Shown here: piece after piece, positions 47,657-63,418 of the stretch
Position numbering within the stretch: position 1 is the stretch's first letter
Layout of the letters: every line of letters starts with the position of its first letter
Sequence record: MZ443780.1
DNA: 64,000 nucleotides
Direction: 5' to 3' (one strand)
Program-made: the position numbers and the translations under genes
Notes under the pieces: generated by a model
What the model was told of the DNA's origin: nothing
The model's input: only the letters and a program-made list of their open reading frames with translations
Database searches by the model: none

Positions 47657-47955
47657 AGCTTATTATACCTGTCTACCAGCTCATCCATGCTGTCATCTAC
47701 GGACGGAGGCTTAACATCAGTCTCAGGCTTCCGCGTGTTCAGGTCTTTCACCGCCTCGTTGACAGTCTTGCTGTCTTGGACTTGGTTCTCGATTGCTGCT
47801 TCACGCGTATTCTCAGCGGCTTTCTGCTCACCTGTAACGGTCGATGGGCTAGTCTTAGGACGACGGAACAACAACGCCGCTACTACCAACACAACAACAG
47901 ATGCGAAAACCTTCCAGTATTTTCTAAACAACTCAATAGCCTTTGACATAATCAC
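47653..47955 (-). CDS. i-spanin-like type II membrane protein
   Basis: N-terminal TM (VFASVVVLVVAALLF) plus coiled-coil; overlaps the lipoprotein gene. Confidence 0.55.
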   Translation of the reverse strand: MIMSKAIELFRKYWKVFASVVVLVVAALLFRRPKTSPSTVTGEQKAAENTREAAIENQVQDSKTVNEAVKDLNTRKPETDVKPPSVDDSMDELVDRYNKL

Positions 47956-47964
47956 GCACTCCCG

Positions 47965-48273
47965 CTATTCGGCTTTGTCGTCAGCCTGCTTCTGCGCTTT
48001 GGTCGTCTGCAAGTTGACGAGATTCTCAACCGTGAATGCCAAAGAGAAGTAGGTTAAATGATCGGTCTGACCGTTCATCAGTAAACCGATGAACATACCG
48101 GTAGACACGAACACTGCGGCTATGGACGAGATTGGATTCAGCGTCCAATACTCTTTCCAGTTCAGGCCTTCTCGCTTAGTCTTGACTACATAGTTCATCA
48201 AGACGCCGCCAACGTATGAAAGAAAGAAGGCTACGATTTGAATCGTTGGCATTTGTGATAATACATCACCCAT
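47965..48273 (-). CDS. holin-like membrane protein
   Basis: 102 aa, 2-3 TM segments, charged C-terminus, adjacent to spanins. Confidence 0.5.
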   Translation of the reverse strand: MGDVLSQMPTIQIVAFFLSYVGGVLMNYVVKTKREGLNWKEYWTLNPISSIAAVFVSTGMFIGLLMNGQTDHLTYFSLAFTVENLVNLQTTKAQKQADDKAE

Positions 48274-48293
48274 GTTAATACTCCCTATTAGAC

Positions 48294-48323
48294 AAAAGAA
48301 AAGGGAGAGCCGAAGCCCTCCCT
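48294..48323 (-). terminator. intrinsic terminator
   Basis: On - strand AGGGAGGGC-TTCG-GCTCTCCCT followed by TTTCTTTT. Confidence 0.75.
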
Positions 48324-48328
48324 ATAGA

Positions 48329-48568
48329 TCAAAGCTGTTCAGCGGTAATCTGCCCAGCTTGATACAGTTCCCGTTTGCGCGTTTTCCACGATGAGGAAAG
48401 TTCAGAGAAGAACTCTCTCAGGCGGTCATCGTCCAGTTCAAACGGTTGTGCCACGCCATACTTCTCGCACATTGCTTCGTATGCGGTCACGTATTCCTGT
48501 TGAAGGAATGACTTCTCAGCGCTAACGCTAACGTACTGCTGCGCTGTCAGAGCTACAGATACTTGCAT
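48329..48568 (-). CDS. hypothetical protein (79 aa)
   Basis: GAGGA SD. Confidence 0.7.
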   Translation of the reverse strand: MQVSVALTAQQYVSVSAEKSFLQQEYVTAYEAMCEKYGVAQPFELDDDRLREFFSELSSSWKTRKRELYQAGQITAEQL

Positions 48569-48603: not shown

Positions 48604-49203
48604 TCAAACGAATTTCAAAACAAGGTCGTTGATAATCACTGCTTTCGACTGGTCAGTAGGGGTGCTGCTATTCGCATACACCTTGCCGCCTTTCAGTCTG
48701 AGGTCTGCGTTCGAGTTCTCATCCCCAACAGAACATATTGCGAGGAACGCACAGCCTGCATCGTTGGTGCCTGTCTGCAAGTTGAGCGTATTCGAATATG
48801 CGCAAGCGACGATACACCAAGTAGGCGTAGCGTCTTTGAGGAAGTAACTCGAACGATAGTCAGTGTTACCAGCAGCGGCCTTCATGTTCATAGCAGACGC
48901 AAGAAGCACAGGCACGTTGTTCGCATTGAGCGTCATCGCAGCCTTGTTACCTGCCACACCGCCAACGTAATCAGCAGCGTGGGCATTAAGCAACGGAGAG
49001 ATACGCGTGTACAATGCGTTACCACCAGCAAGCTGGGTAGCTTCGGCAAGCAGTGCCTGAACTTCTGCTTTAGTCGGCATCGTACCTGTATAGAACAGGA
49101 TTGAGTTCGCAACAGTAGTGTAGTTCGTAGGAATAGCCGCAGACACCAAGCTGCTGAATGCGTTACGCATCATTGCGTTCGCAGTAGAGGGAAGCATTTT
49201 CAT
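48604..49203 (-). CDS. virion fibre/structural paralog, short class
   Basis: ILFYTGTMPT, PTWCI, SVGDENSNADLRL family motifs; GGAGG SD before ATG 49203. Confidence 0.65.
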   Translation of the reverse strand: MKMLPSTANAMMRNAFSSLVSAAIPTNYTTVANSILFYTGTMPTKAEVQALLAEATQLAGGNALYTRISPLLNAHAADYVGGVAGNKAAMTLNANNVPVLLASAMNMKAAAGNTDYRSSYFLKDATPTWCIVACAYSNTLNLQTGTNDAGCAFLAICSVGDENSNADLRLKGGKVYANSSTPTDQSKAVIINDLVLKFV

Positions 49204-49204
49204 A

Positions 49205-50113
49205 TCACACACCCTCCAGGATGTTATCCACGATACGAACGGTAAAATCAGAAGTAGCCATCTGACCGTACTGACCGATAGACGATACGCCGAGCACAAG
49301 GTCAGTGCCAACATCAAGCACAAGCCCGTAGTAATCGTCCTGCACCTGACTGAGATATTGAGCAGTACCGGAAGGAATGCTCAGAGTCAGAGGCACAAGC
49401 ACAACATGCGTGAATGCGGCTGTGACGAAATCGCTCGCTCGTTCTGCATAAGGCGTGAATGCCAACTGGTTATTGGTAGACGTACCGTTCATGCTCAGTC
49501 GGAGCTTACGCGCAGTGATATCCACATCGTTGATGCCAGTGACAACAGTGATGCGTGTCCACACTAACGTTGTAGGGTCCTGATACTCAAGGCGAATGTT
49601 GCCTGTATTGATAGGCGTAGCATTCGGCACGAAGAACGAACGAAAACGCAGGGTGCGTCCATAGTCGTACTCGACGATATCATTCGCATCATAAGATGGA
49701 GCGACACCAGTAGTGATATCAGAACAGGCTGCTAAGTTCGCCAGTACCTGCTGAGGAGTTTTGCTCCAACCGGGTGACGGGATATAGCGAGAGTATTCAG
49801 GGTAGACAGCAAACGTTGCAACAGCCTGTTTGTTCGTAGCATCGAATGCCATGCGGCCCTGACCGTACCCGCCAATCGGCATCAGACTGCGAACGCGAGA
49901 ATACAGACGGCAGAGAATACCGTTCGCATCAGCAGTCTGGTTCTGGTACTTGAGTTCAACAGCGCAGCGAGAAGTCGCAATCAAGTCAGTGAGTGACTTG
50001 GGCACGTTCGCGCTACTACCGTTGCGGAAGAACGCTGCCCAGCCGCTTGAGTTTGTCGTAGTACCGGCAGTCTGTAGCAATTGATACAGCGCTTGCTTTT
50101 CAGAGACTAACAT
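49205..50113 (-). CDS. virion fibre/structural paralog, long class with discoidin-like insert
   Basis: VEYDYGRT...LEYQD..W...TARKLRL; C-terminal LDVGTDLVL. Confidence 0.6.
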   Translation of the reverse strand: MLVSEKQALYQLLQTAGTTTNSSGWAAFFRNGSSANVPKSLTDLIATSRCAVELKYQNQTADANGILCRLYSRVRSLMPIGGYGQGRMAFDATNKQAVATFAVYPEYSRYIPSPGWSKTPQQVLANLAACSDITTGVAPSYDANDIVEYDYGRTLRFRSFFVPNATPINTGNIRLEYQDPTTLVWTRITVVTGINDVDITARKLRLSMNGTSTNNQLAFTPYAERASDFVTAAFTHVVLVPLTLSIPSGTAQYLSQVQDDYYGLVLDVGTDLVLGVSSIGQYGQMATSDFTVRIVDNILEGV

Positions 50114-50122
50114 AATGCCTCC

Positions 50123-50656
50123 TTAGAGTTTGATACGCATATCAGCTACACGTACAGGCTGACCAGCAGTAACAGTACCACCGAGAATACGCAGGTCGGC
50201 AGTTGAGTTCTCATCACCGACAGTACCTGTCATGAGTGCATAACAGTTAGTGCCAGCAACGAAGTTTGTCCACGAATCACCGGCAGAAGCAACAGAAGTC
50301 ACACGCATCAGGAACCACGTTGGCGTACCGCTTGTTGCGATAGTCATCGTGTTCGGCTGGCTGCTGAACGGCAGGTTGATGATGTTGTTATCGTAGTCCA
50401 TGTTCGGTACAAACGAAGACAGTGTGGCATCACCGAGGAAGTTCGATTGCGTTGCAAATGAGGAGAGAGCAGCAGCGGACCACGTGAACATCGTGTTGGT
50501 CGTAGACAGCATCGCTTGTAACTGATCATCAGTCGGTGGCGTACCGGAGAACAGAGCGATATGCACGGTGTTTGCAGAGGCAGCAGACCCTGGGACTAAG
50601 CGCCAGTTGAGTGCAATCATTGCTTGCAGCGAGTTAAAGGCTTTAGAAACGCGCAT
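50123..50656 (-). CDS. virion fibre/structural paralog, short class
   Basis: HIALFSGTPPT, PTWFLMR, GTVGDENSTADLRILGG. Confidence 0.7.
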   Translation of the reverse strand: MRVSKAFNSLQAMIALNWRLVPGSAASANTVHIALFSGTPPTDDQLQAMLSTTNTMFTWSAAALSSFATQSNFLGDATLSSFVPNMDYDNNIINLPFSSQPNTMTIATSGTPTWFLMRVTSVASAGDSWTNFVAGTNCYALMTGTVGDENSTADLRILGGTVTAGQPVRVADMRIKL

Positions 50657-50657
50657 C

Positions 50658-51722
50658 TTAGTATACCTCCAGCACGACAGGTTTAAAGGTCACATTGAAC
50701 GAGCCTACAGCTTGTTCCTGTCCAGGGTACACAGTTGCGTCATTCAACACAAGGTCAAAGCTAGCAGACTGTTTCAGATCGTCTGTAACTGTCAGGCCGT
50801 AGTGCGGGAAGATGCGGCCGTAAGACTGCGCGACAAGACCTGTAGAGATTGCAGTTGCGTTGTAGCTTGTACCCCACAGCAGAGGAAACATAACTGCATG
50901 TTGGATTTTGCCCAACGTACGCGGTGCAGTACCAGCAGCGTACTCGCCGTAGAAGTGCAGCGCATAAGTACCGATACCCAGAGGGAATGGGTTCGCTACA
51001 GCTTTAGACACGATACGGAAGCGACGACCCTGAACAGTAGACGGCAATTGATAGAACTTCTCAGTAGCTACTGAGGTTTGGAACAGGTTCGTTTGCAGGT
51101 TGGTCACGTCTACCCACGAGCTACCCTGCTGCACTTGCAGGAAAGGTAAGTTTGCAGCGGTGTTAGCAAACAGGTTGTTCCCTGCAGTTGTGAGAGTGAT
51201 GCCCGCCAGAGAGTTAATAACGACCTCCGCACCGAAGTCATACTCAGCCAGAGTCCATGTACCGTCTGCGTTCGCTTGTTTTACCACAGGCACAGATGCG
51301 TTCGTTGAAGGACTAGCGCACGGTTGCAGCGTAGCACTTGAAGTCGAAGCAACACGGTGCATCAGGATAGTAGCGTACAGCATGTCCAGTTGCAGACCGA
51401 AGATAGACAGGTTAGCTGCTACGTCTTGATACACAGTGCTGTAGGAAGCGAACGTCACTTTAGGCAGAACGCGTTTACCACGGAAGCCTTGTGCAGTAGT
51501 CCATGCCGGAGCAGGAGAGACCTGATAGTTAGGTGCTACAGCCGGTTGAATTTGCTGTAGACTTGCACCAAGAGGCTGCTGCGTACACATACGACCTGAC
51601 ACCATGTTGTTCAGCAGAGTCTGAATGTCGTAGTTAACAGGGTTAGGAAGATTCCCTTCCATAAAGGCACCGTACATAATGACCGGCGTGTTCTGATAGA
51701 TAGGTAGGATTTTCATATACAT
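50658..51722 (-). CDS. virion fibre paralog, long class with F5/8-type-C (discoidin)-like domain
   Basis: AEYDFGAE...LQVQQG..WVDV...LP..VQGRRFRIV...LHFYG. Confidence 0.65.
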   Translation of the reverse strand: MYMKILPIYQNTPVIMYGAFMEGNLPNPVNYDIQTLLNNMVSGRMCTQQPLGASLQQIQPAVAPNYQVSPAPAWTTAQGFRGKRVLPKVTFASYSTVYQDVAANLSIFGLQLDMLYATILMHRVASTSSATLQPCASPSTNASVPVVKQANADGTWTLAEYDFGAEVVINSLAGITLTTAGNNLFANTAANLPFLQVQQGSSWVDVTNLQTNLFQTSVATEKFYQLPSTVQGRRFRIVSKAVANPFPLGIGTYALHFYGEYAAGTAPRTLGKIQHAVMFPLLWGTSYNATAISTGLVAQSYGRIFPHYGLTVTDDLKQSASFDLVLNDATVYPGQEQAVGSFNVTFKPVVLEVY

Positions 51723-51782
51723 GCCCTTGGTTTAAAGACAGTTCAAATTAATGACGTGGCAGCCGAAGCCACCACGTGTGTC

Positions 51783-52307
51783 TTACAGTTGAATGGTAAG
51801 ATCGAGGAAGCGATATGCTTGACCTGTCTTAATCGTACCACCGATGAACTGTAGTTCTGCGTCAGACCCTTGAGCACCGACACTGCCGATCCAGAACGGA
51901 CCAGTAAGGCTTGCGCTGTAGCTGAACCCTGCCCAGTTGTTTGATGCGTTAGCCGGAAGAATACGCGCAACATAGAACGTAGGTGTACCGTCAGCAGCAC
52001 CAACCAACGTAGCGGCCTGCCCAGAAAGAGGCAACGTGACTGTACGAGCAGTGACGTTCACTACTGGAGTGATTGCAGCAGACGCCAACACACCAAGGAA
52101 GTCTGTAGACGTCAAGCCAAGATTAGCTGCCACCGTACTCCATGTAAGCAGACTGTTAACAGCACCTGGAGCCATGAGATCAAGTGCTTTACTGATCTTA
52201 GGAGCAGTGCCTTTGAACAGAGCAATGTGCAACGTGTTAGCAGCCAGAGCAGTTGCAGGGAATGCAGCGTTCATCTGGGCAAGAGAGATACCTTTGTTGC
52301 TAATCAT
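51783..52307 (-). CDS. virion fibre/structural paralog, short class
   Basis: HIALFKGTAP, PTFYVAR, GSVGAQGSDAELQFIGG. Confidence 0.7.
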   Translation of the reverse strand: MISNKGISLAQMNAAFPATALAANTLHIALFKGTAPKISKALDLMAPGAVNSLLTWSTVAANLGLTSTDFLGVLASAAITPVVNVTARTVTLPLSGQAATLVGAADGTPTFYVARILPANASNNWAGFSYSASLTGPFWIGSVGAQGSDAELQFIGGTIKTGQAYRFLDLTIQL

Positions 52308-53380
52308 ACGCCCCTCCCTACGAGTGCATCTTGCTTAATGCGGAACGTTGGCACAGGCGCTTCACCTAACGCAATGCTGTATGTCGTATCTGGCATCACG
52401 ATATCGTTGCTTGCAGCGAGCTTGAGATCGTCAGTGACGGTCAGATGTGTCATACCGAAGTAACGTCCGGCAACCGTTGCTTCTGCGGCAGGCCAGTTGA
52501 AGTGCCACTGGGTGCTGTTAGCATAACTACTGTTTGCCATGAGTGTAAGCAGAGACATGTGCTTGTACTTGCCCAACGTGCGAGGCTTCGTTCCTGTGTA
52601 GTTGCCATAGAACTGCAAGCTAAACGGATAGTGGCCTGTAGTAGACCACGGCCATGCGGTAGTCTTGTTCACCAGACGCCACTTCTGCGCTTTGATAGAC
52701 ACAGGCAGGTTGTACGCTACTGGTGACCAGTTGGTGGTTGTGCGGACGTTCGTGTAACAGTCAACTGCATCAACCCACTGACCATCAACATAGGCCTGCA
52801 GGAAAGTATTCGCAGTGCCGAGCACCATCAGGCTACTTACCGTAGAACCGATAGATACGCCCACCAGCCCTTTGAGTTCCATCTCAGCGCCGAAGTCATA
52901 TTCAGCAATCAACCAGTTGCCAGCTTCTGTCAGGTTGTACTGAGGACTCAGGTACAGACTGGTATTGATGGAGAACTGAGTCTGAATAGTCCCCATCTTA
53001 TGTGCGAGAATAGTTGTAGCTACGCTCTCATTGTATTTGCCGACAGTTGCAGCGAAACGGTTATCAAGTGCAGGCAGTCGTACTTTAGGAACGACGCGCG
53101 ACAACGCACTGATAGCAGCACCATATCCAAGCGAACCACTGAACTCAACCCACGCAGGATAGAAGTTGGTGCAGAGGAACGTTGACGCAGTTACGGGCTG
53201 ATACCGCCAGCTAAACGGTGCAGTAGACATAAATGTTTTCTGAAACAGACGCATAGCGATAGCGTCATTGAACGTGCTATGAATGCCACGCTCGCCATTT
53301 GCTGGCACGTCTGTATCATACAGCAGACCGAGCGCAAACACCGACGCTACGTTTGCGGCTTGATACGGAAAGAGTTCCAT
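52304..53380 (-). CDS. virion fibre paralog, long class with discoidin-like domain
   Basis: AEYDFGAE...LQAYVDGQWVD...LP..IKAQKWRLV...LQFYG; close paralog of 50658..51722. Confidence 0.65.
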   Translation of the reverse strand: MELFPYQAANVASVFALGLLYDTDVPANGERGIHSTFNDAIAMRLFQKTFMSTAPFSWRYQPVTASTFLCTNFYPAWVEFSGSLGYGAAISALSRVVPKVRLPALDNRFAATVGKYNESVATTILAHKMGTIQTQFSINTSLYLSPQYNLTEAGNWLIAEYDFGAEMELKGLVGVSIGSTVSSLMVLGTANTFLQAYVDGQWVDAVDCYTNVRTTTNWSPVAYNLPVSIKAQKWRLVNKTTAWPWSTTGHYPFSLQFYGNYTGTKPRTLGKYKHMSLLTLMANSSYANSTQWHFNWPAAEATVAGRYFGMTHLTVTDDLKLAASNDIVMPDTTYSIALGEAPVPTFRIKQDALVGRGV

Positions 53381-53389
53381 AGAGCGTCC

Positions 53390-53971
53390 TTAGCTGAATG
53401 AGATGTTGTTGATGTTGACAGTACCATTCAGGTTGAATGTACCGTCACCGTTGTCAGTCAAAGGTACACCCATGCTGATCAAGTCTTGTGGCGTGAACTC
53501 AAACACCGTAGTTGTAGACACAGTTCCAGCGGCGTATGCAGAAGTGCTGTTACTGACTAACAGGTACATGCGATTGAATGCTTTCGCGTAGCTGAAACGT
53601 CCGAGCAGACCGTTCAGGTCGAGAGTACGCTTGTCGCCACCAACGTTGATAACACGCACAGTACCAGACGAAATGAACGATGCGTCCATGACACAGTTAG
53701 GCAAATTCGCTGCGAGATATGTACGCAACGAAGTGAGACTGAACAGAGCTTGTGACTGGTTTGTCCAAACGCTGTCTGGGATTGTGTCGCCCGTAGAGAA
53801 CACGATAGCAGCAGAAGGTTCAGCCGATATAGGAACGCCACCAGATTGATAGGCACCAGCTTGGTTGTATGCAGTAAACGCACTCGGTACCCAGGGCATA
53901 TCCACGGTAATAGATGCAGTAGAACTAAGCGAGTCACCACGCATGTTGAGCATTGCTTTAGAGATATACAT
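53390..53971 (-). CDS. virion fibre/structural paralog, short class (divergent)
   Basis: Thr/Ser/Asn-rich, IVFSTGDTIP; alternating position in array. Confidence 0.55.
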   Translation of the reverse strand: MYISKAMLNMRGDSLSSTASITVDMPWVPSAFTAYNQAGAYQSGGVPISAEPSAAIVFSTGDTIPDSVWTNQSQALFSLTSLRTYLAANLPNCVMDASFISSGTVRVINVGGDKRTLDLNGLLGRFSYAKAFNRMYLLVSNSTSAYAAGTVSTTTVFEFTPQDLISMGVPLTDNGDGTFNLNGTVNINNISFS

Positions 53972-54873
53972 CAGCTACTCCTTTGCGTGAAGCGAAGTTT
54001 AGGGCAGTACATCAGCGTCTTCTGGTTAGGAATAACCTGATCGACTAACTTGAACGGACCCTGATTGCCGACAGCACCAGCAGTGAACATGATCTCGTCA
54101 CTGTAGTTAATGTCGCCATGAGTGAACGTGTTGCAGTGCGCAAGAGCAGCCCACGTAGGTGAAGTAACTGCCGTAGCACTAGGCACATCTACAGAACTAA
54201 GCAGCACACGCATAGCAGACTGCGCGGACGTGCTGGTAGACTTGTAACGATAGCGCTTAGAAGCACGAGGCGCACTTAGCACTAGGCAGGTTGTGTCGCC
54301 TGCAATAGCTGTAGCACTACCGAGTTGATATTCGGTTAGACCGTCATCAGACAGAGCCACCAGCTGGAACGCATCACCAACTGTATTGTTGAATTTGATA
54401 TGCGTTACGGTAACTGCCGTGTCGAACTCGAAGTCTATATCAGTGCCCAGATTACGCGGAGCAGGAACGTAGCCAGTACCTGCACCCATAATCAGTGTGA
54501 TGCTACGATCAGTAAAACCTGAACGAGTGATACGATGAGGCACAAGTTGAGATACCACAAGAGCAGCAGTGCCAATGGTCCCATAGTACGATACCCCTTT
54601 AGGGATGTACTGAGATTGAAGGGCAAGTGCAATCACGTTGCCGTTTTCAATTCCAGTAATAGGGTTTCGCACGATACCGATAGACTGATTGTACATATCA
54701 GCAAGTGACTTATTGTTGAAGGCTGCTTCGAAGCCCTCTTTTGAGGTAGGCAGTTTGCCGCTAAACGCAAAAATATTCCACCCGGCACCTACATTGGGGT
54801 CTTGCAGGAGAGTGTTATTTGTGTTTGTGCCAACAACTGCCTGAGCCATGTTACGTGTGTTAATGATTTTCAT
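53971..54873 (-). CDS. virion fibre paralog, long class
   Basis: IFAFSGKLPT, DFEFDTAV...RASKRYRY, PTWAAL, GAVG. Confidence 0.6.
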   Translation of the reverse strand: MKIINTRNMAQAVVGTNTNNTLLQDPNVGAGWNIFAFSGKLPTSKEGFEAAFNNKSLADMYNQSIGIVRNPITGIENGNVIALALQSQYIPKGVSYYGTIGTAALVVSQLVPHRITRSGFTDRSITLIMGAGTGYVPAPRNLGTDIDFEFDTAVTVTHIKFNNTVGDAFQLVALSDDGLTEYQLGSATAIAGDTTCLVLSAPRASKRYRYKSTSTSAQSAMRVLLSSVDVPSATAVTSPTWAALAHCNTFTHGDINYSDEIMFTAGAVGNQGPFKLVDQVIPNQKTLMYCPKLRFTQRSS

Positions 54874-55328
54874 TAGCTCACCACCGGTGCAACAGATTTG
54901 TTATTCGCTTTCGTGTCGGACAGGTCAAGCTGAGGAACAGACACGCGGAACACGATGTTATCGAACAGCGGTTCAATCGTCTGGTCAGTAACGAAAGAGC
55001 CTGTAGCGATTGGAACATCAATACGAGACTTCCCAGGGTTCGACGCAAAGTTGCGTGGTGTGAACTTGGACTGAACCTGATTCACACCTGCAGGAACAAG
55101 CACAATGCTGTCTGAACTGCTCACCTGCTGATTGAGAATCTGCGACCAGCGATACGCCTGAATAGCAAGCGTTACCGTATCTGCGACACGCTCTGCTGGG
55201 TGCAGTGCGGCCTTCTCATTCGTCATAGGCTTTGACGGTTGTGAGTTCGTACTGATCTCAATCTGAGACATAACGAACACGAAGTCAGCAAAGAGATCTG
55301 GATCATACGCAATGACAGGTACAAACAT
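54873..55328 (-). CDS. putative virion structural protein
   Basis: 151 aa within array; GGAG SD. Confidence 0.55.
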   Translation of the reverse strand: MFVPVIAYDPDLFADFVFVMSQIEISTNSQPSKPMTNEKAALHPAERVADTVTLAIQAYRWSQILNQQVSSSDSIVLVPAGVNQVQSKFTPRNFASNPGKSRIDVPIATGSFVTDQTIEPLFDNIVFRVSVPQLDLSDTKANNKSVAPVVS

Positions 55329-55329
55329 G

Positions 55330-56418
55330 TTATGCTCCTTGTCTCACGCTGTAGCGGTTGATGATTGGCGTGAATGCAGCGTTACCACCTCCGTAGCCAC
55401 CTTGAACCATAACGTTAGTCGCTACAGGCTTCTGCAACGCATACGTGAACTGATCCACCTGAGTACCGTTCAAGAACACAGTGTGCGTGTTGGTCGTTGC
55501 GTCATACACATATTTGATGTGGACAACACTACCAGACCAGAGCGCAGAGTACGGAGAAATTGAGCGCGTGACTTTAGCAGGCGCGGTTCCACCGTTAACG
55601 TTATTCCAGATGAGCAGACCACGTTCGTTAGAACGGTCGAAAGCAATGACCATTCGGTTAGACGCAGCACCGCCGATATTGAGCAGACACCATTCAGCGT
55701 AATCAGAGTTACCTGACTGGTGATAGTCACACTCGATTGTGAATGACTTGCTGCAATCAAAGGCAGTTGGCGTTGAAGTCGTGCAGATACCGTTAGTGCC
55801 TAGGTCGATGCCGCTACCATCAGCAGCAACTTTCAACGCGCCTGACGTAGTGTATGCGTTGCCAATGTAATCGGTAAACGCGCCAGTGTTGAAGCTACCT
55901 GTGTCGAACGCTATCGTTTCGTTACCAGCAAGCCATGTCACGCCAGCAGTCTCAGTCCAGAAGCTCGACAGGCTAATGTTGAACGCAAGAATGGTGATTT
56001 GCGTCTTATAGCCGTTCGGGTCATACTTGATATTCAAGTCAGGATAGAGCAGCGTAACGTCAGTGCCTACAGTCAGACACACAGGCAGAATGCCACCGAG
56101 AATCAAATGGGTTGGCACACCTTCGGCTGTAGCAGTAAGCAGACAGTCAGAGACAGCGATCTTAGTGCGGTCGATTGTGCGCACACAGTTGGTGCCTTTC
56201 GCAAGCACGGTACAAATGCCTGTAGATGCAGCGAGCGCCGCGTCGAATACATAGCCTGCACCTGTCTGCGTCTGATAGTTCAGGCACTTGTTGATATCAG
56301 CTTCGGTAAAACCGGCATTCAACTTGACCAGATAGCAGGACTTATCGTCTGCTGTAGCCTGAGCGAACAAACGAGTCAACTGAGGTACAACAGAGTTTGC
56401 GAATAACTTATAGTTCAT
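55330..56418 (-). CDS. virion fibre paralog with C-terminal ConA/LamG-like lectin domain
   Basis: N-terminal family unit (PTHLI, LTVGTDV); SFTIEC...LLNIG...HIKYVYD..T..VFLNG; GAGG SD before ATG 56418. Confidence 0.65.
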   Translation of the reverse strand: MNYKLFANSVVPQLTRLFAQATADDKSCYLVKLNAGFTEADINKCLNYQTQTGAGYVFDAALAASTGICTVLAKGTNCVRTIDRTKIAVSDCLLTATAEGVPTHLILGGILPVCLTVGTDVTLLYPDLNIKYDPNGYKTQITILAFNISLSSFWTETAGVTWLAGNETIAFDTGSFNTGAFTDYIGNAYTTSGALKVAADGSGIDLGTNGICTTSTPTAFDCSKSFTIECDYHQSGNSDYAEWCLLNIGGAASNRMVIAFDRSNERGLLIWNNVNGGTAPAKVTRSISPYSALWSGSVVHIKYVYDATTNTHTVFLNGTQVDQFTYALQKPVATNVMVQGGYGGGNAAFTPIINRYSVRQGA

Positions 56419-56419
56419 G

Positions 56420-57376
56420 TCATACCTCGGTAGATAGACGGAGCTGGGCGACAGATGCGAACTCACCAGGACCGAGTGATGTGCTTAACAACTCGATAGG
56501 CTTGCCGCTACCAATAGCACCAACTTCACATGCGAAGTAAGTAGGCACGTAGCTGCCGTTTGCCAGAGCACCATAGTTCGTGTCTTGAATGACAACGATA
56601 GCACTCTTAATCGACTTGTACGCTGCGGTGCGACCTACATCCGATGCAGTCACAGGCAGAACGCGACGAGTACCTGACGTCTGAATGAAACGATAACGGT
56701 TCGACTGAGGGATAGACGTGGCAATCACGTTACCTTCTTGGTTAGCAGCAATCGACCAAGCGACAGCAGTACCAACTGTACCAGAGCCATCAATAGGAGC
56801 AATCGTGCCCGCCGCGGCGGTTGATATGTCACCCACATCAGACAGCACTGCGTCAATCGTAACAGCGAAGTCATACGTCAGGTCAGTAGTAGACAGATGA
56901 ATGCCGGGCATCAGTGCATCGTGAGGCACACCTGCATAGTCCCATGGTCTGAACCCAGCAGGACCAATGCCCCACAGAGCTTTGTTACCTGCATCGTTGC
57001 TGGTGTTGTACGCTGTCTGAATCTGAACAGCAGCAACACCGTTATAGCCTACAGGACGCGCTTTCGAAGGATAGTGAATTGTAGCACCGTTCTTGATCTC
57101 GTACACATGACCAGAACGAGCTTTCCACCCTTCTTGCTGGTCCATCAGAGGCAGCAGACCTTCTGTAGTTGGACGCAACACAAGGCGCGTAGCAGCAACA
57201 GCGTTGTCATACAGGTTACGCATGTCGAGCAGATGCTGGGAGAAGTTACCTTGATCGGCAATCTCCGTATCGAAGAAGAACACGTTAACAGTCTGACCGT
57301 TAGCCGCATTCGATGCCCAGCCAGTGCCTAAGTTAAGCACACTGAAAGGCAGTAGGTTGTGACCTAAGATGCGCAT
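56420..57376 (-). CDS. virion fibre paralog, long class
   Basis: VNVFFFD, TYDFAVTI, PTYFACEVGAIGSG. Confidence 0.6.
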   Translation of the reverse strand: MRILGHNLLPFSVLNLGTGWASNAANGQTVNVFFFDTEIADQGNFSQHLLDMRNLYDNAVAATRLVLRPTTEGLLPLMDQQEGWKARSGHVYEIKNGATIHYPSKARPVGYNGVAAVQIQTAYNTSNDAGNKALWGIGPAGFRPWDYAGVPHDALMPGIHLSTTDLTYDFAVTIDAVLSDVGDISTAAAGTIAPIDGSGTVGTAVAWSIAANQEGNVIATSIPQSNRYRFIQTSGTRRVLPVTASDVGRTAAYKSIKSAIVVIQDTNYGALANGSYVPTYFACEVGAIGSGKPIELLSTSLGPGEFASVAQLRLSTEV

Positions 57377-57873
57377 TAGAACTCCTTAGAATCTTTGACG
57401 ACTGTAGCGAGGAATTTACCGTTGCGCAGATTCGCTGCGGACAGAATCAAGTCAGCACCAGAGCCAGCAGCACCGATAGTCAGAATCAGGAAGCCGCCGT
57501 AAGGTGTGCTTGCAATGTCCTTGTTAAACACAATAACATTGTATGCTGTCAGCAAGTCAGAGATAGTCCCGGCAAAAGTACCAGACAGAGTTGCGCTCAG
57601 TCGGAACTTATACTTGTTATCTTGACCGTGAATCCAGCGCACAGGGTTAACAGTAACAGAAGTCAGGTCGAGCACCGCAGTAGCACCGATAGCTGTTTGC
57701 ACTGTAGTGCCGTCGGCAACAACAATGTTAGCAGGGTCAGGCACTTTAGCGAGGCAGATAGTCTTCTGCATATTCGAGAGGCCGTACTTCAACGGCGGAT
57801 CAGAAGCAGGACGTTTACCTGCATCAGGGATCGTAATGCCGTTGGCGACCAGAGGGAATGAAACTATTTCCAT
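57376..57873 (-). CDS. virion fibre paralog, short class
   Basis: LTIGAAGSGADLIL C-terminal family motif; GGAG SD. Confidence 0.6.
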   Translation of the reverse strand: MEIVSFPLVANGITIPDAGKRPASDPPLKYGLSNMQKTICLAKVPDPANIVVADGTTVQTAIGATAVLDLTSVTVNPVRWIHGQDNKYKFRLSATLSGTFAGTISDLLTAYNVIVFNKDIASTPYGGFLILTIGAAGSGADLILSAANLRNGKFLATVVKDSKEF

Positions 57874-57897
57874 TTTAGATCTCCAGTTAACTCGCTA

Positions 57898-57910
57898 TAA
57901 ATTACTGACA
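57898..57910 (-). promoter_or_regulatory. candidate late promoter TGTCAGTAATTTA
   Basis: Identical to 31865-31877; intergenic. Confidence 0.5.
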
Positions 57911-57929
57911 ACAAAGGTTCGTGTAGGAC

Positions 57930-58982
57930 TTAACACCTAAAGGAGCGCTCGATCGCCAGAGGTGTGTAGTCTCTCAATGCAGCTACAGGTTTCTCATTTG
58001 GCAGAATCGCTGAGGCTACATCAAAATCAATTCCCGCTTTAGCCACCAGCACATAGACTGGAGCGCCATAAGCAAACGCGATAGGCATTGCTCCCCATGT
58101 GATAGAGTATGCGGGAGTATCTTCATGAGTACCTTGTCCATAGTACGCAAGATTTTCATTCGCAGGGGCTGTCCCATAGGAACCGGGAGAGTATGATGTT
58201 GTATACGACCAACCTCCACCCGAAAAGTACGTCGTACCGTAAACAACAGATCTATACGGCTGAAATAGACGAGGTGCTCGCGCGAAAGAGTATGCACCAT
58301 GGTTATAAGGTTGATTGGCTGTTATGCCTGGTAATGACTGAGATGCAGTAACAAGGACTGCTGTATCTGCAACTCTGTCCATTGAGTTCACGCCTATATT
58401 TTGCAGATAGGACGTTGTGTTTCTTGACCAATAACCGATACCGCTGCCACCACCGCCATAGATCGTCCCTGACTCTGAGAGCGTTGTATTTGCGTTGGCC
58501 GAGGGTGTCGTATACAAAGACACACTGTAGCTGGTGTTATCAAACGACGGTAGTACCATATCAGAGTATGCAGGCACTGTAGGATTGCTTGTGCCTAACG
58601 TATCAAGCAGACTACCAGAACCATTGAGTGCACCGCCACCTGTATCATCTTTTCCTATGGCATAGTATCGACAGAACAGGTTGAACGCAGTTGTGTTGCG
58701 ACTTTGGTTGGTCTGATCGAATGTAGACTCCTTTCTCACATTCGGAACATAGTTGTAGAACAACTTATTACCAGACCAACCAGCTCCTCTAACACACAGC
58801 ATATTCTTATCTGCATCAACTGAGGCACAGAAAGAGAGTGACGTGTTTATCTTGTCCCACATGTCAGAGAACGAAGACTTGTCAGTTGGTTTTGGTGTGC
58901 TATCAGAAAACAGAAACATGCGCTTTCTGGCTATCTCAACTTTCTTCTCCAACAGCTGGGCACCGTTTGAAACAAAAAGCAT
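57930..58982 (-). CDS. virion fibre paralog, long class
   Basis: RMFLFSDSTPKP; Ser/Thr/Tyr/Gly-rich middle; C-terminal AKAGIDF. Confidence 0.6.
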   Translation of the reverse strand: MLFVSNGAQLLEKKVEIARKRMFLFSDSTPKPTDKSSFSDMWDKINTSLSFCASVDADKNMLCVRGAGWSGNKLFYNYVPNVRKESTFDQTNQSRNTTAFNLFCRYYAIGKDDTGGGALNGSGSLLDTLGTSNPTVPAYSDMVLPSFDNTSYSVSLYTTPSANANTTLSESGTIYGGGGSGIGYWSRNTTSYLQNIGVNSMDRVADTAVLVTASQSLPGITANQPYNHGAYSFARAPRLFQPYRSVVYGTTYFSGGGWSYTTSYSPGSYGTAPANENLAYYGQGTHEDTPAYSITWGAMPIAFAYGAPVYVLVAKAGIDFDVASAILPNEKPVAALRDYTPLAIERSFRC

Positions 58983-58991
58983 AATGCGTCC

Positions 58992-60029
58992 TTACATCAG
59001 ATACAGCGTCTTAGAACCAAATGGCAGTTCAGATTCGATGTTCAGCACAGCAACATCACCAGTGGCCGCGGGTGCGGTCTGTATAATGTCTTGGCCAATC
59101 TTGGCACGAAGCATATATCCTTGTCCGTTACATTTAAACATCATCATGCACGAAGACAAGGTTACGTCAGGGGTATTCGATTTACCTGTAACAGCTACTC
59201 GCATGTTGAAGGCGGCTGCGGCAGTTCTGTCATAACCGCTAACGCCATTTGACGTTGTAGGCACATCCAACGAAGTGAATTGATTGAGGCCGTTAGCGCT
59301 GTATCGTTTACCTACAGGACGCACGAACACTATGTGGTCAGCAGCTAACGATTGTGCTTGCATATCCTGCATGGGCGTAGCAGTTGTTGAGATGAGAACA
59401 TAAGATTGCGTGACAGTTTCCTGTAGCGTACTCAGGTTCATCGACGCGTTCATATAGCCTGCATCGTAGCCACTGTATGTTCCCCAGAAAGGGTCAGTGC
59501 TACGCGCATACTGATTGCCCGCTTTTGAGCTATATGTCTCTATGGAAGCAGACTGTCTAAGGCCATTAGGGAAAACGAGCATCGACTGCGATGGCCAGTA
59601 GTAACCAGACTCGCATGTGTCTTTGCTAGGACCGTTCCAACCGTTGAACACAGGGTTACCGTTAGACCACTGTTGGCCGTTGCCTACAGCCGAGTCGTAG
59701 ACACAGAAGTAACGCTCTGCTGTAGCTTTTGGCGTCTGAGCCGTAGTGTAACTGTTATGCACAGCACTCACGCCAGAAATCAAGTTAGCACTACGCGCAG
59801 GGTAGAAGTAGTTATCTTTGATGCCACTCATAGGACTGAGTGTGATAGACTGAGCGTTTGTGTCTGCGCTGTTTCCCCAAGCCCTGACTTTTGGTATCTT
59901 TGATAGGTAGTGTGCTTCGTCCAGATGTGCGTCTGACAAATCCGCCTGATCGTCAAAGTACATGGCACGATGCAGTGCCAGCGTAGCGATGTTGTTTGCT
60001 TTCTTGTTGTGGTACGTTGCAAAGAGCAT
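58992..60029 (-). CDS. virion fibre paralog, long class
   Basis: AGGAGG SD before ATG 60029; RAMYFDD; C-terminal AKIGQDI. Confidence 0.6.
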   Translation of the reverse strand: MLFATYHNKKANNIATLALHRAMYFDDQADLSDAHLDEAHYLSKIPKVRAWGNSADTNAQSITLSPMSGIKDNYFYPARSANLISGVSAVHNSYTTAQTPKATAERYFCVYDSAVGNGQQWSNGNPVFNGWNGPSKDTCESGYYWPSQSMLVFPNGLRQSASIETYSSKAGNQYARSTDPFWGTYSGYDAGYMNASMNLSTLQETVTQSYVLISTTATPMQDMQAQSLAADHIVFVRPVGKRYSANGLNQFTSLDVPTTSNGVSGYDRTAAAAFNMRVAVTGKSNTPDVTLSSCMMMFKCNGQGYMLRAKIGQDIIQTAPAATGDVAVLNIESELPFGSKTLYLM

Positions 60030-60052
60030 CGTAACCTCCTTATAAATAGGTA

Positions 60053-60982
60053 TCACAGAGCAAACTGGTTACGAGCGTACAGGGAGAACTCTTTCACTGA
60101 GGTAACTGTAGCATTCGTACCAGCCAGAGTGTTTCCGTGTGCGAAGTCTCCATCAGCACTCGAAAGAACGACAGCGCGAAGTGTTGGCCCCTCGTCAACT
60201 ACAAGCAAACCCTTAGTCAACTTGATTGCAGACTCAACGCCACCACTGAAAGCGAAATCACTGGACACAGCATTAGCATACGTTGACGTGTCGCTACGCG
60301 TTGGCGTCGTAATTCGGTTCTGACCGCTGATTAGAAACGAGGGTGACCATTTGAACGCAACAGCCGTACCATTCGTATAGGTAGGTGCGAATATGTTTGT
60401 ACTGTTATCGTCGTTGTAGGCCCAAGATGCAATAGTGGAAGTGGCCTCCGTTGAACCAGAAGGAGTAAACTCTCGGTGCCAATGCGTCCATGCTGCTGCA
60501 TACTGGAGACTCTGTTTAGAGGCTTGCGAGGTGAGTTTCGGGAATGTCATTGTCGTGTTAGTGAATGCGTAAGCACCAACATAAGCAGGACGTACCCATA
60601 TAGGACCTTCACGTTCACCAGCAGCACCTTGAGGGAATGGTATAGAGTTCTCAAGGAAATCAATCTCCGTGCGAGGATTCAGGCCACGCCCCGGATGCAA
60701 CATTGTCTGTATGAAACGCTTATCCGTAGTGAAGTCTGGATCTTCGGACAGGAATGATATCCGCGCAAAGTGAACTCGTTGTGTGCCACCAGCAACACCG
60801 GCCACAGCACCCATCATGCGGTGAGTAACAAGAGTGCTGCCTGACTGAGACTTCACAGTTGCGCGTGTGCTTCTTATCGTATTTTTGAGCGCTGCCATTG
60901 AAGCGAAGTTCAAAGGTGTGGCATCGTCGTAAAAATAGAGAAGTTTTCTTAGGTCTTGTTGTGCAGGGAATATGTATTGCAC
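60053..60982 (-). CDS. virion fibre paralog, long class
   Basis: KLLYFYDDATP; GGAG SD, GTG start. Confidence 0.6.
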   Translation of the reverse strand: MQYIFPAQQDLRKLLYFYDDATPLNFASMAALKNTIRSTRATVKSQSGSTLVTHRMMGAVAGVAGGTQRVHFARISFLSEDPDFTTDKRFIQTMLHPGRGLNPRTEIDFLENSIPFPQGAAGEREGPIWVRPAYVGAYAFTNTTMTFPKLTSQASKQSLQYAAAWTHWHREFTPSGSTEATSTIASWAYNDDNSTNIFAPTYTNGTAVAFKWSPSFLISGQNRITTPTRSDTSTYANAVSSDFAFSGGVESAIKLTKGLLVVDEGPTLRAVVLSSADGDFAHGNTLAGTNATVTSVKEFSLYARNQFAL

Positions 60983-61001
60983 TATCCATCTCCCAGAAGG
61001 T

Positions 61002-61031
61002 AAAAAGGCCCGTACCGTTAAGATACAGGCC
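61002..61031 (-). terminator. intrinsic terminator
   Basis: On - strand GGCCTGTATC-TTAAC-GGTACGGGCC followed by TTTTT. Confidence 0.65.
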
Positions 61032-61037
61032 AGAGGG

Positions 61038-61619
61038 CTACACCAACAGACGACCTGCGATGGTGATCGCTACACCGTTAAGTGTTGTGTCAGCAGTGTC
61101 AGGCGCAACTACACGCAACTGGTCGCCAGCAACAAGAATGATCTCTTGATCCTGATACGCAGCAAGCGGTGTAAACACACCAGTCTTCGAGCCAGCACCA
61201 AACGTCACAGTACCAAGCTGAATAACTGCCTGGGTTGCTGAGTCGTATGCACTGATCTTAAACGCAGCCGCAGCAGTAGCCGCAATGTCAGCGTTGGCCA
61301 TAGAGCCGCCGAAGTTTTTGATGATTGCAGTTGTGCGAACAGACAGGTAACGAGCGATCTCCTGACCACCAGCATAACGCTTGAGCACACTCATGCCTAC
61401 ATCATAGGGATTTACAGACTGCAACTGATTAACCCACTTGGCACGTACTTGACTGTAGACGTACAGGCCAGGTTGGTTAGCACCAGCTACAGCAGTCAGG
61501 TTCCATACGCGACCGTTGCTTGGGTTAGATGGAAAGGTAGGCCCAGATGAGTTTGGATCTCCCGGTGCGCGTGTAATCTGCGCCTGTTCGCCCGCTAATT
61601 GAATACCAAAAGCGTACAT
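61038..61619 (-). CDS. putative tail-fibre/collar-associated protein
   Basis: FPSNPSNG.VW..., Ig-like C-terminal part; AGGAG SD. Confidence 0.55.
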   Translation of the reverse strand: MYAFGIQLAGEQAQITRAPGDPNSSGPTFPSNPSNGRVWNLTAVAGANQPGLYVYSQVRAKWVNQLQSVNPYDVGMSVLKRYAGGQEIARYLSVRTTAIIKNFGGSMANADIAATAAAAFKISAYDSATQAVIQLGTVTFGAGSKTGVFTPLAAYQDQEIILVAGDQLRVVAPDTADTTLNGVAITIAGRLLV

Positions 61620-61630
61620 TGTTTATCTCC

Positions 61631-61849
61631 TTAGGCGATTCGCGCTTCGCCCGTAACTGCATACGGGAAGACGATTTTTACCGTGTTGTTATCAACGATG
61701 ATAACGTCAAGAGGTAGCACTTGATGGAGTTTACCATCAGGCATATTCACGCACGTTGTCACAGCAACTGGACGCCCGAAGTTGTGTGTAATCGTCCATT
61801 CAGATGCTGGCGTTTCTTGCTTGTAGCTACGCCCCATTGAATAGTTCAT
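61631..61849 (-). CDS. 72-aa single 'W.I.HN.G..P' beta domain protein
   Basis: WTITHNFGRPV...DNNTVKIVF; GAGGA SD before ATG 61849. Confidence 0.65.
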   Translation of the reverse strand: MNYSMGRSYKQETPASEWTITHNFGRPVAVTTCVNMPDGKLHQVLPLDVIIVDNNTVKIVFPYAVTGEARIA

Positions 61850-61856
61850 AAGTTCC

Positions 61857-62762
61857 TCACATATCGAAGATGTATTGTGACTGAATACTGGATGATAGAG
61901 CGGCAGTACCGTAACCATCAAGCACAGGCGTCACATGCGCTAAGTCGCTCTCTGCAACCAATGCAATGAGCAACGTGCTTTTCTCATTGACGAAAGCAGC
62001 CATTCCCCATGTAGGAGCAGACACGCCTGGAGTACCACCAGTGATAGGATGATACAAGTTTTGTGTGCCCCAGTAGATAGAGAAGAAAGTGCCGCCTGAG
62101 TTGTTGAAGTTGATATTCCTATATGTGACTGCGTACTGCAACCTGTTAGCTGGGATGCCGTTGGCACCCATAACAATGTTACCGTTGCTCGACCATGAAT
62201 ACGAAGGACCAGCGACGTTAGTGAACGAGTCCAATGTCTCGGGGTACACAAATACACCCATATTGGTTGTATACATGTTGTTGCCCTGCTGACCGTTAAG
62301 CTGCCCGTTAGCAAGAATATTCAGTGTGCGGTCAACACCGTATGCAGCTCTCGCTTGCGGTACACTCTCACCAGACGGCACAGTAATCATACCGAGAGTA
62401 TCACTCAGATTGAGAGCAAACTGACGTTCCATGTATCGGTAGCTGGGCATGGTAGGTTGGTTCACAGGAGCAAGTGTTCCTGATACCGTACCGTTATTGC
62501 TGGCATACGTATGGCTGACCAAACGAGTGTGTAACCAGCGGCGTGTACCATCAGCACTGACACCGGCTGCAGGGTTAAGCGGAATCTCTCCGTTTGTCGG
62601 ATAGTCTCTGGCGCTCGTCACAGATTTTTCAGCACACAACTTAACGAACCCGTTCCATGTCAAAGTGCCCATGTCTGGCTTAGGCGTGGACGCTTCGAAC
62701 AGGAACAGGCTTCGTTCTATCATATGCTTTTGAGCGGTACGTTTTGACGGCACAAAAAGCAT
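61857..62762 (-). CDS. virion fibre paralog, long class
   Basis: RSLFLFEASTPKP; PTWGMAAF. Confidence 0.6.
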   Translation of the reverse strand: MLFVPSKRTAQKHMIERSLFLFEASTPKPDMGTLTWNGFVKLCAEKSVTSARDYPTNGEIPLNPAAGVSADGTRRWLHTRLVSHTYASNNGTVSGTLAPVNQPTMPSYRYMERQFALNLSDTLGMITVPSGESVPQARAAYGVDRTLNILANGQLNGQQGNNMYTTNMGVFVYPETLDSFTNVAGPSYSWSSNGNIVMGANGIPANRLQYAVTYRNINFNNSGGTFFSIYWGTQNLYHPITGGTPGVSAPTWGMAAFVNEKSTLLIALVAESDLAHVTPVLDGYGTAALSSSIQSQYIFDM

Positions 62763-62774
62763 ATGCCACCTACC

Positions 62775-63371
62775 TTAGTACAGAATGACAGTACCAGACT
62801 GCGCACTATCAAACGTGATGGTGAGCTGGCTGTTGCTGTCATGTACGATTGACTTAGGTTGAACCTCTTCCGTACCCTGATAGATGCGCACCGCTGGGTG
62901 ATAGCCGAGGTTGTGAGTAACAACCCACACAGCTTCATCAGTGAATGATGTGGTGAACGCTACGGTAGGAGTAGGCAGACCGCTTTCGATACCAGACAGA
63001 AGCACAGCAGTACCGGCAACGGGTTCAGGGAACAGCACGATAGTCGTGTTTGCATCCTGAGCTTTGATGGAGGAAGGCTGAACCACTTCGCCATTTTCGT
63101 CGTAGCACTGCACGATAGGCGTAGCAGTATTCATGTTGTGGGCAATTTCCCAGCGAGATGACGCAGATGCCTGAGCATAACGGTACATCGTCATTTGCTG
63201 CGTCAGTGGCACCCAGATAGGCAGAGTTTCGAACTCAACACAGAACATAAGACGCTTGTCCATGAAGATTGCCATGCCGGGCTGCGGGTTCTCAGGCCAG
63301 TCAGTTACTTCTGCGAACTTAAAGTTCTTGATTGAGCCGAACGCTAAGTCTAAGCTCCCGATGACTTTCAT
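62775..63371 (-). CDS. fibre-associated protein with two 'W.I.HN' domains
   Basis: WEIAHNMN..P and WVVTHNLGYHP repeats; AGGAG SD before ATG 63371. Confidence 0.65.
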   Translation of the reverse strand: MKVIGSLDLAFGSIKNFKFAEVTDWPENPQPGMAIFMDKRLMFCVEFETLPIWVPLTQQMTMYRYAQASASSRWEIAHNMNTATPIVQCYDENGEVVQPSSIKAQDANTTIVLFPEPVAGTAVLLSGIESGLPTPTVAFTTSFTDEAVWVVTHNLGYHPAVRIYQGTEEVQPKSIVHDSNSQLTITFDSAQSGTVILY

Positions 63372-63390: not shown

Positions 63391-63418
63391 AAAAAGGGCA
63401 GGCAGATGCCCACCCTTT
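63391..63418 (-). terminator. intrinsic terminator
   Basis: On - strand AAAGGGTGGGC-ATCT-GCCTGCCCTTT followed by TT. Confidence 0.65.

Follow-up and report, generated by a model that had tools for sequence, protein, structure and literature searches.

Garland proteins share the fold of T4 gp8 and A511 gp105, and they are dimers (PMC10811340, PMC12796354). The garland proteins of phage Milano seem to form beads-on-a-string filaments (PMC10811340). Dimers of the gp105-type fold also make beads-on-a-string chains in phage 812 and A511, where a separate scaffold strand threads the dimers of the arm-segment fold (PMC13433997, PMC10811340). The arm of phage 812 bears receptor-binding proteins (PMC13433997). 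We compare these systems with a gene array in Erwinia phage pEa_SNUABM_40, an Alexandravirus with a genome of 267 kb. It is a jumbo phage, and its host is the fire-blight bacterium. The window, that is, the whole stretch of DNA that was analysed, is the first 64 kb of the genome (MZ443780.1, positions 1–64000). Between 48604 and 62762 it holds 18 annotated genes, pEaSNUABM40_00079–00096, called gp79–gp96 here, which lie head-to-tail on the minus strand and are all annotated hypothetical. Our reading, to which we give a probability of roughly 0.55, is that the array encodes an expanded and diversified set of lectin-bearing subunits of the baseplate periphery or of a tail-fibre network, of the arm-segment or garland type.

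The fold of the core was approached through the short protein gp81 (50123–50656, 177 residues). An exhaustive profile search with gp79, gp81 and gp83 gave 73 clusters of relatives, nearly all of 160–210 residues. The AlphaFold2 (AF2) model of gp81 built with these sequences has a predicted local distance difference test score (pLDDT) of 93.8 and a predicted template modelling score (pTM) of 0.87. It shows an N-terminal helix and then strands; phi812 gp118 is likewise described as an N-terminal helix followed by strands (PMC13433997). In a Foldseek search of the PDB the best match is 9rkv_A, with E 1.2e-4, probability 1.0 and a template modelling (TM) score of 0.51 by query and 0.62 by target. 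It is the only match below E 0.001, and it is a 139-residue chain of the 'tail fibers' entry of phage 7-7-1. That entry comprises a long fibre (domains to residue 587), a short fibre (to residue 298) and the small garland protein gp014 (PMC12796354). Through this single chain, the modelled gp81 is similar in fold to what is most likely a solved garland-type member. The next matches, at E 0.03–0.05, are phi812 arm-segment and baseplate chains and A511 gp105 (9fko_A, 9euf_b, 6hhk).

An earlier note on this DNA, made from the sequence alone, had likened the proteins to self-polymerising pilin or curli subunits. No pilin or curli protein is among the 50 best listed structure matches of gp81, and no Pfam pilin or curlin match was obtained; the relatives that were found are threaded by a separate scaffold chain, and the likeness is given up. 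The strand complementation that the note also suggested survives in altered form, in that the closest solved relatives do assemble by it, but with a strand from the scaffold chain and not with donor strands of their own.

Searching BFVD with the gp81 model extends the fold to further members. A 186-residue Yoloswag protein (E 1.1e-3) and a 197-residue JA13 protein (E 1.2e-2) are, judged by their lengths and neighbouring accession numbers, orthologues of gp85 (53390–53971, 193 residues). Gp85, which is tied to the other members by structure only, through these orthologues, probably shares the fold. The gp81 model also matches many proteins of 110–140 residues from uncultured phages.

The long protein gp84 (52304–53380, 358 residues) displays a second fold. 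Its AF2 model has a pLDDT of 86.0 and a pTM of 0.89, and it finds 65 PDB matches with E≤1e-3. In each of the 50 best listed there is a module of the discoidin, F5/8 type C or galactose-binding kind. The best is 5y4m, with E 2.3e-5, and the others include CASPR2, neuropilin b1, DDR2, factor VIII C2, lactadherin C2 and the galactose-binding module of a bacterial sialidase. The matches and the model strands (E156–176, E192–198, E201–207, E221–238 and E253–261) place a discoidin-like beta-sandwich at about residues 150–262 (52595–52933, bounds approximate). The model thus contains a discoidin-fold domain, and in our reading of it the strands that flank the sandwich follow the order of the gp81 elements. 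The sequence signal is fainter. Pfam F5_F8_type_C (PF00754) matches residues 146–241 of the JA11 orthologue with E 5e-5, at 23.9 bits against a cut-off of 28.2, and it matches two NCTB paralogues at the same place below threshold (E 0.03 and 0.19); gp84 of pEa_SNUABM_40 gave no match to this family. By sequence, gp82 and gp80 share the region that corresponds to the discoidin domain of gp84.

Gp88 (55330–56418, 362 residues) appears to carry its extra domain at the end of the chain, behind a conserved N-terminal domain. Its residues 208–349 (55372–55797) match the concanavalin-like Pfam family PF13385, Laminin_G_3, below threshold (E 6e-4, with 20.4 bits where the cut-off is 27.6). Residues 403–515 of JA11_080 match the same family, also below threshold (E 1e-3, 19.7 bits). 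Among the BFVD matches of gp81 are a 339-residue JA13 protein (E 4e-3) and a 351-residue Yoloswag protein (E 2e-2), both with a query TM of about 0.5, and their lengths and neighbouring accessions point to orthologues of gp88. The gp88 homologue of the Yersinia phage has 150 residues, the core alone. Discoidin and Laminin-G3 lectin domains are both known on the fibres of jumbo phages (PMC7824862). Separately, gp88 contains ten cysteines, far above its neighbours.

The conserved scaffold with a variable payload that the earlier note had described is supported: the short members are the bare core, and gp84 is the core with a discoidin domain inserted. For the same protein, the claim of a variable insert between conserved termini stands, the sandwich lying between the N- and C-terminal core strands.

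Sequence comparison groups the genes less readily. The array was collected from 12 phages of at least six genera, including Alexandraviruses, AD1, Y3, JA11, Yoloswag, Yersinia phage fHe-Yen9-02 and NCTB, and the E-values of the local searches refer to databases of 279–912 sequences. BLASTP of all array proteins against each other links only gp82 with gp84, gp81 with gp83 and gp79 with gp81. PHROGs divides the array into many families. With BLASTP and shallow orthologue profiles only three small families are obtained, and deeper orthologue sets helped little. Iteration with hidden Markov models (HMMs), whether started from the short proteins or from gp82, converges on nine genes, gp79, 80, 81, 82, 83, 84, 86, 89 and 90, called family A here. 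These were tested in a set of 912 sequences with reversed and shuffled sequences and unrelated open reading frames (ORFs) of the window as decoys. The gp82 seed recovered the same nine genes and none of the 633 decoys and controls, the best decoy having an E of about 0.01 against the threshold of 1e-4; the short seed stopped at gp79, 81, 83 and 90 in this set. Sequence therefore speaks for a real superfamily of nine genes, with weak deep links.

A second group, family B, consists of gp91, 92 and 93, which HMM iteration joins. Gp96 falls just below threshold and is probably a member. Direct profile-profile comparison of the short family with family B, and of the gp84 family with family B, gave nothing. 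Such null results, including that between the short and gp84 families, are explained by split domains, which defeat local alignment. HMMs of the N- and C-terminal 70–75 residues of family A find sub-significant but correctly placed matches in family B and gp88, so that family B may be tied to family A by a weak motif resemblance. HMM iteration and hhalign gave no sequence link of gp85, 87, 88 or 94 to other array genes. Searches of Pfam, NCBIfam and PDB sequences returned nothing above threshold for any array protein, family B included. The profile of the short family (65 sequences) found as its best PDB sequence an antibody chain, with E 0.59. The count of about 16 paralogues given by the earlier note is accordingly reached in part: HMMs join nine, structure adds gp85 and gp88, gp91–93 and gp96 form a separate group, and gp87, gp94 and gp95 stay outside.

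The three motifs named in that note, an N-terminal one, a PT(W/F/H) strand and a C-terminal one with VG, are real in the short family, where they map onto strands E31–36, E114–120, E137–148 and E155–157 of the gp81 model. In strict form they are restricted to gp79, 81 and 83, with gp90 added for the C-terminal motif. Only three columns of the 65-sequence alignment of the short family are conserved at 90% or more, namely G38 and P41 of the N-terminal motif and G147 of the VG motif. Loosened patterns were counted against shuffles and 75 other ORFs of the window. The N-terminal motif is then present in 10 of the 18 array genes (2.4 in shuffles, 2 of 75 controls), and PT[WFHY] in the C-terminal part in 8 of 18 (1.0 in shuffles, 3 of 75 controls). 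These counts are inflated and suggestive at most, because the patterns were loosened after the sequences had been viewed.

The alternation of long and short genes proved exact. In transcription order, the eight genes of lowest coordinate encode 300, 193, 358, 174, 352, 177, 302 and 199 residues. A short gene of the 79/81/83 type directly follows a long gene of the 80/82/84 type, at -4 to +1 nucleotides (nt), in 32 of 32 cases in the 12 phages, and the next gene downstream of each pair is at least 9 nt away. For instance, gp83 overlaps the end of gp84 by 4 nt, as it does in all nine phages that have the pair, and gp79 is separated from gp80 by a gap of 1 nt. The partner types match as well (83 after 84, 81 after 82, 79 after 80), except in the three most distant cases. 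Similarity among the short proteins decreases from 81–83 through 79–81 to 79–83 by BLASTP and hhalign, and the long proteins give the parallel ranking 82–84, 80–82 and 80–84. Where copies are fewer, it is a whole pair that is missing, JA11 and Yoloswag having two pairs each. In the Yersinia phage there are three, one of them in a different place, and a metagenomic relative alternates 447, 174, 429, 180 and 586 residues. The tight spacing and the parallel rankings therefore indicate, at the level of sequence, a translationally coupled two-gene unit that was duplicated and kept together. This is consistent with heterodimers, and each pair probably forms one.

The same coupling could have another meaning. 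Pairs of a fibre gene and a chaperone gene are common in phages. Like a tail-fibre assembly protein, the short protein might then act as a chaperone or adaptor in the assembly of the long one, whose gene lies immediately upstream; it would not be a stoichiometric part of the structure and might be absent from the particle. The coupling in all 12 phages agrees with this. However, the cores of the short and long proteins are homologous, and fibre chaperones do not as a rule share such homology. By structure, the short protein matches a virion component best, and gp90 is a short member that is placed differently relative to the long genes. We consider a chaperone role improbable.

The setting of the array is best seen in Y3, a better annotated relative. 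There, genes on the same strand run in the order major capsid protein, sheath, tube, VgrG, baseplate wedge, tail fibres, ILEI-domain protein and tail fibre, followed by a 'putative virion protein', the array, and small membrane and lipoprotein genes. In pEa_SNUABM_40 the baseplate wedge gene is followed by one for a 1511-residue 'tail protein'. The upstream neighbours gp98 and gp103–105 match virion-structural and tail-fibre PHROGs, and a 959-residue protein is a further fibre candidate near the array. From the Y3 order and the PHROG matches of the neighbours, the array closes the tail-fibre end of the structural gene block. Genes for the baseplate, tail fibres and a 'virion structural protein' precede it on the strand that they share; members of the gp8/gp105/garland family are likewise encoded in the baseplate or receptor-binding module.

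Genes at such a place in the late block might also be non-structural, encoding secreted or intracellular late proteins, for example lectins released at lysis or modifiers of the host surface. All of the array genes are annotated hypothetical, their assignment to the virion has no proteomic support, and the array adjoins a lysis-like cassette (gp75–78). On the other hand, the fold match is a baseplate-periphery protein, the array is embedded among tail-fibre genes, and no signal peptides were seen on reading the array sequences. A non-structural role is thus unlikely in our estimate.

The cassette consists of four small genes just downstream of the array (47192–48568, minus strand). Gp75 has a lipobox and a C-terminal membrane helix, resembling a unimolecular spanin, and it matches a PHROG labelled 'lipoprotein'. 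Gp76 has one N-terminal membrane helix and gp77 has several membrane helices.

The array block recurs in about 50 deposited genomes, and its genes differ in their rate of change. Most are 55–89% identical among Alexandraviruses, while gp89 and gp90, like the structural genes gp94 and gp97–99 that flank them, are 82–96% identical. Family B and gp96 form the fastest-changing part, with 23–80% identity for gp91–93 and gp96. Gp93 is only 23–29% identical to its best relatives in other Alexandraviruses, and the mean conservation of gp91 is 0.51. Two of the six relatives compared lack gp92 and three of the six lack gp96. Gp91 is closest to that of SNUABM_28, the phage whose gp83 and gp84 are the most distant. 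Such mosaic identity patterns in the family B region suggest cassette exchange. The variation is also uneven within proteins: gp86 and gp88 have cores conserved at 0.86–0.93 and variable parts at 0.55–0.70. In gp86 the N-terminal part is at 0.86–0.93 and the middle at about 0.57; in gp88 residues 1–150 are at about 0.9 and the C-terminal remainder at 0.55–0.70.

Copy number varies too. Among close relatives (records L002–L007) one to four family B genes lie between gp90 and gp94; the family B genes of the present window are at 57930–60982 and 61857–62762. AD1 has one truncated copy of 164 residues. In PaBG, the slot after the homologues of gp98, 97, 95 and 94 (record L017, 19078–33656) encodes proteins of 588–1030 residues annotated adhesin or fibrinogen-like, none of which matches the family A or B HMMs. 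The PaBG proteome was considered as support for presence in the virion and set aside, PaBG having a different gene numbering and no member of the family.

From the families, the two folds, the pair unit, the place in the tail-fibre module and the pattern of variability we infer proteins that are in the virion, dimerise, form chains and bind sugars. The short members gp79, 81, 83, 90 and probably 85 would be the bare core. The long members would be the same core with a sugar-binding-type domain, inserted in gp84 as a discoidin and placed C-terminally in gp88 as a concanavalin-like domain, the latter according to a weak match. Each adjacent long/short pair would give a heterodimer. [quoted passage not shown] The lectin-type domains would point outward and bind host surface polysaccharide weakly and multivalently, and the family B cassettes gp91–93 and gp96 are candidates for fast-changing tips that determine specificity.

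Several results weigh against this scheme. The link from short to long proteins is weak, with E 1e-5 to 1e-4, and the bridging is lost at a threshold of 1e-5. Direct profile-profile comparison of deep alignments of the short family and the gp84 family is not significant, and the profiles of the short family, gp82/84 and family B match no PDB sequence significantly. As to structure, 9rkv_A is most likely the garland protein, judged by length alone, and the molecule name could not be confirmed. The matches to 6hhk, 9fko and 9euf are weak, with probability 0.25–0.63 and TM about 0.3. T4 gp8 is not among the 50 best listed matches of either the gp81 or the gp84 model, so that its relation to the array is second-hand. 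The gp84 core has no PDB match of its own among the 50 best listed, because all of these were discoidin domains. Family B and gp87 are not placed in the baseplate-arm scheme. No proteomic or imaging record that puts the array proteins in virions was found, and the AD1 paper contains no mass spectrometry (PMC6143709). Finally, the known systems use one or two genes and homodimers; a long/short heterodimer has no direct precedent, with Milano gp125/gp127 as a possible one.

A rival reading, taken up from the earlier note, places the array proteins in the hairs of these phages. The phages described with hairs include Y3, AD1, the JA phages and Lu11, and also CBB, which is unrelated (PMC6143709, PMC13282480, PMC5259590). 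The array proteins could be self-polymerising subunits of the hairs along Y3-type tails, joined by strand complementation through their conserved terminal strands. The first three of these hairy groups have the array, as seen in Y3, AD1 and JA11; Lu11 is not among the listed tblastn matches. The gene products of the CBB hairs are not assigned (PMC5259590), and a 2026 review describes the Y3 hairs by morphology only, naming no gene product (PMC13282480). Relatives by fold do chain through added strands, recombinant A511 gp105 forming beads-on-a-string chains via its own tag (PMC10811340), and the twelve genes gp79–gp90 could furnish many different beads. Against this, the solved systems use a separate scaffold strand, and their chains are at the baseplate, not along the sheath (PMC13433997). 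Hairy CBB gave no tblastn match to gp81. Hairs of about 119 nm, as in CBB, need many bead repeats, whereas the array genes are single-copy and all different. Other fibre candidates adjoin the array (gp98, gp103–105 and the 959-residue protein), and the localisation of the array proteins is a prediction only. That the array makes the hairs is therefore possible, with a low probability, and less likely than a network at the baseplate rim, because the solved relatives are at the baseplate, CBB is unmatched and other fibres are adjacent. A combined form is slightly more doubtful still: gp79–gp90 would make six heterodimers, threaded by a scaffold in fixed order into lectin-studded fibres, which would be the Y3, AD1 and JA hairs, with gp91–93 and gp96 as exchangeable tips.

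The remaining members of the baseplate-arm or garland set that we favour are as follows. Gp79 (48604–49203, 199 residues, phrog_17152) is a short core protein that hhalign relates to gp81 at 99.6%. Its partner gp80 (49205–50113, 302 residues) is a long family A protein by the gp82-seeded iteration, and hhalign aligns its residues 145–301 with gp82 at 94.5%. Gp82 (50658–51716, 352 residues, phrog_22190), the long partner of gp81, matches gp84 by BLASTP with 1e-32, and gp83 (51783–52307, 174 residues), the short protein paired with gp84, matches gp81 with 6e-26. Gp86 (53971–54873, 300 residues) is a long protein recruited from the short seed and from gp82, with hhalign of 94% to gp89. Gp89 (56420–57376, 318 residues) is a well conserved long protein found in both iterations, 85–91% identical among Alexandraviruses. 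Gp90 (57376–57873, 165 residues) is the most conserved member, 92–96% identical among relatives, and is assigned to the short family by HMM, which recruited four orthologues together with E 6e-6 to 8e-5; hhalign to gp81 is 61.5%. The gp90 orthologues of Y3, AD1 and JA11 are annotated 'putative membrane protein', while the HMM places them in the short family and no membrane helix was seen.

Within family B, gp91 (57930–58982, 350 residues) is a variable cassette, gp92 (58992–60029, 345 residues) has hhalign of 93.6% to gp91, and gp93 (60053–60982, 309 residues), the most divergent, 89.9% to gp91. Gp96 (61857–62762, 301 residues), probably of the same family, matches the family B HMM with E 0.003–0.005, below threshold, and over 37 aligned residues at its N-terminus it shares 35% identity with gp91. 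In Y3 a gp93-like gene occupies the gp96 slot.

Three proteins of the array lie outside these families. Gp87 (54873–55328, 151 residues) is a small protein with a PHROG of its own, and HMMs, hhalign and structure matches gave no link to the array families. Gp94 (61038–61619, 193 residues, phrog_22757) is a conserved, fibre-like protein with a weak tail-fibre PHROG match, and its homologues are retained in PaBG and metagenomic relatives. Gp95 (61631–61849, 72 residues) is a copy of a module of about 60 residues, by hhalign to gp97 (94.8%) and gp98 (90%) and by PHROG matches.

The module is common to gp95, gp97 (twice) and the C-termini of gp98 and gp103 (window 61631–61849 and 62775–63371; record L001 22837–24459 and 26987–27811), and its conservation extends to PaBG. 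Gp103 belongs to a PHROG labelled 'HNH endonuclease', apparently a mislabel for a fibre protein. The gp98 gene (L001 22837–24459) begins inside the window at 63440. Over residues 209–377, gp98 has about 33% identity with a 'virion protein' of PBS1 and AR9, jumbo phages that bind flagella.

The block has five larger intergenic gaps. Four of them contain strong stem-loops on the minus strand, at 63393–63418, 61007–61031, 51754–51777 and 48302–48323 (z -2.4 to -3.2); the 56-nt gap at 57874–57929 has none. Three are followed by T-runs. The other lies between gp83 and gp82 (51754–51777), where the paired part of the array has its sole large gap. A terminator-like scan found it, its folding energy is -21.6 kcal/mol with z -3.2, and its tail is too poor in T to resemble a typical intrinsic terminator. 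The gp83–gp82 gap is 66–71 nt in the eight relatives that have both pairs. The stem-loops may bound transcripts gp97–94, gp93–83 and gp82–78.

These results give a fold or a likely fold to 11 of the 18 'hypothetical' genes. They name candidates, with confident models, for tail-periphery structures that await explanation in an entire group of plant-pathogen jumbo phages, and the composition of the hairs becomes a question that particle proteomics and cryo-EM (cryo-electron microscopy) can answer directly.

Set against the known systems, the array is nearest to the garland proteins of two Agrobacterium phages, 7-7-1 gp014 and Milano gp125/gp127. The best structure match of gp81, 9rkv_A, would be of this kind by its length, and the garland proteins too are small, with their genes among those for receptor binding. 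The two Milano paralogues may form homo- or heterodimers (PMC10811340). They differ in having about 125–140 residues and no extra domain, whereas here the cores have 165–199 residues and half of the members carry lectin-type domains. There are one or two garland genes and at least 11 genes here, and no sequence similarity is detectable.

Phage 812 gp118 and A511 gp105 are the second-tier structure matches, and their fold, a helix and then strands, fits the gp81 model. The phage 812 arm contains six dimers; the twelve genes gp79–gp90 form six adjacent pairs, a numerical coincidence only. The matches are weak, and in these phages a single gene gives homodimers, the hosts are Gram-positive and the threading scaffold is known, whereas the scaffold is guessed here. 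T4 gp8 has 334 residues and would be a 'long' form of the fold. The literature gives it a fold in common with gp105 and the garland proteins and describes it as a dimer (PMC10811340, PMC13433997). With the discoidin proteins (F5/8 type C, CBM32-like) gp84 shares the fold of one domain, which is known on virion proteins of jumbo phages (PMC7824862); in gp84, unlike in these, the domain is inserted within a connector-type core, and its Pfam score is below the cut-off. The likeness of chaperone-usher pilins and curli to the array goes no further than the concept of linking subunits through a complementing strand. Neither an incomplete immunoglobulin fold nor amyloid repeats are in evidence, and the joining strand of the relatives comes from another protein.

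Garland and arm-segment proteins are themselves already known. The balance of these likenesses and differences leans somewhat toward a newly expanded family of the arm or garland type, lectin-bearing and paired, with at least 11 members, lectin-type domains and co-duplicated pairs where the solved systems have one or two genes free of extra domains.

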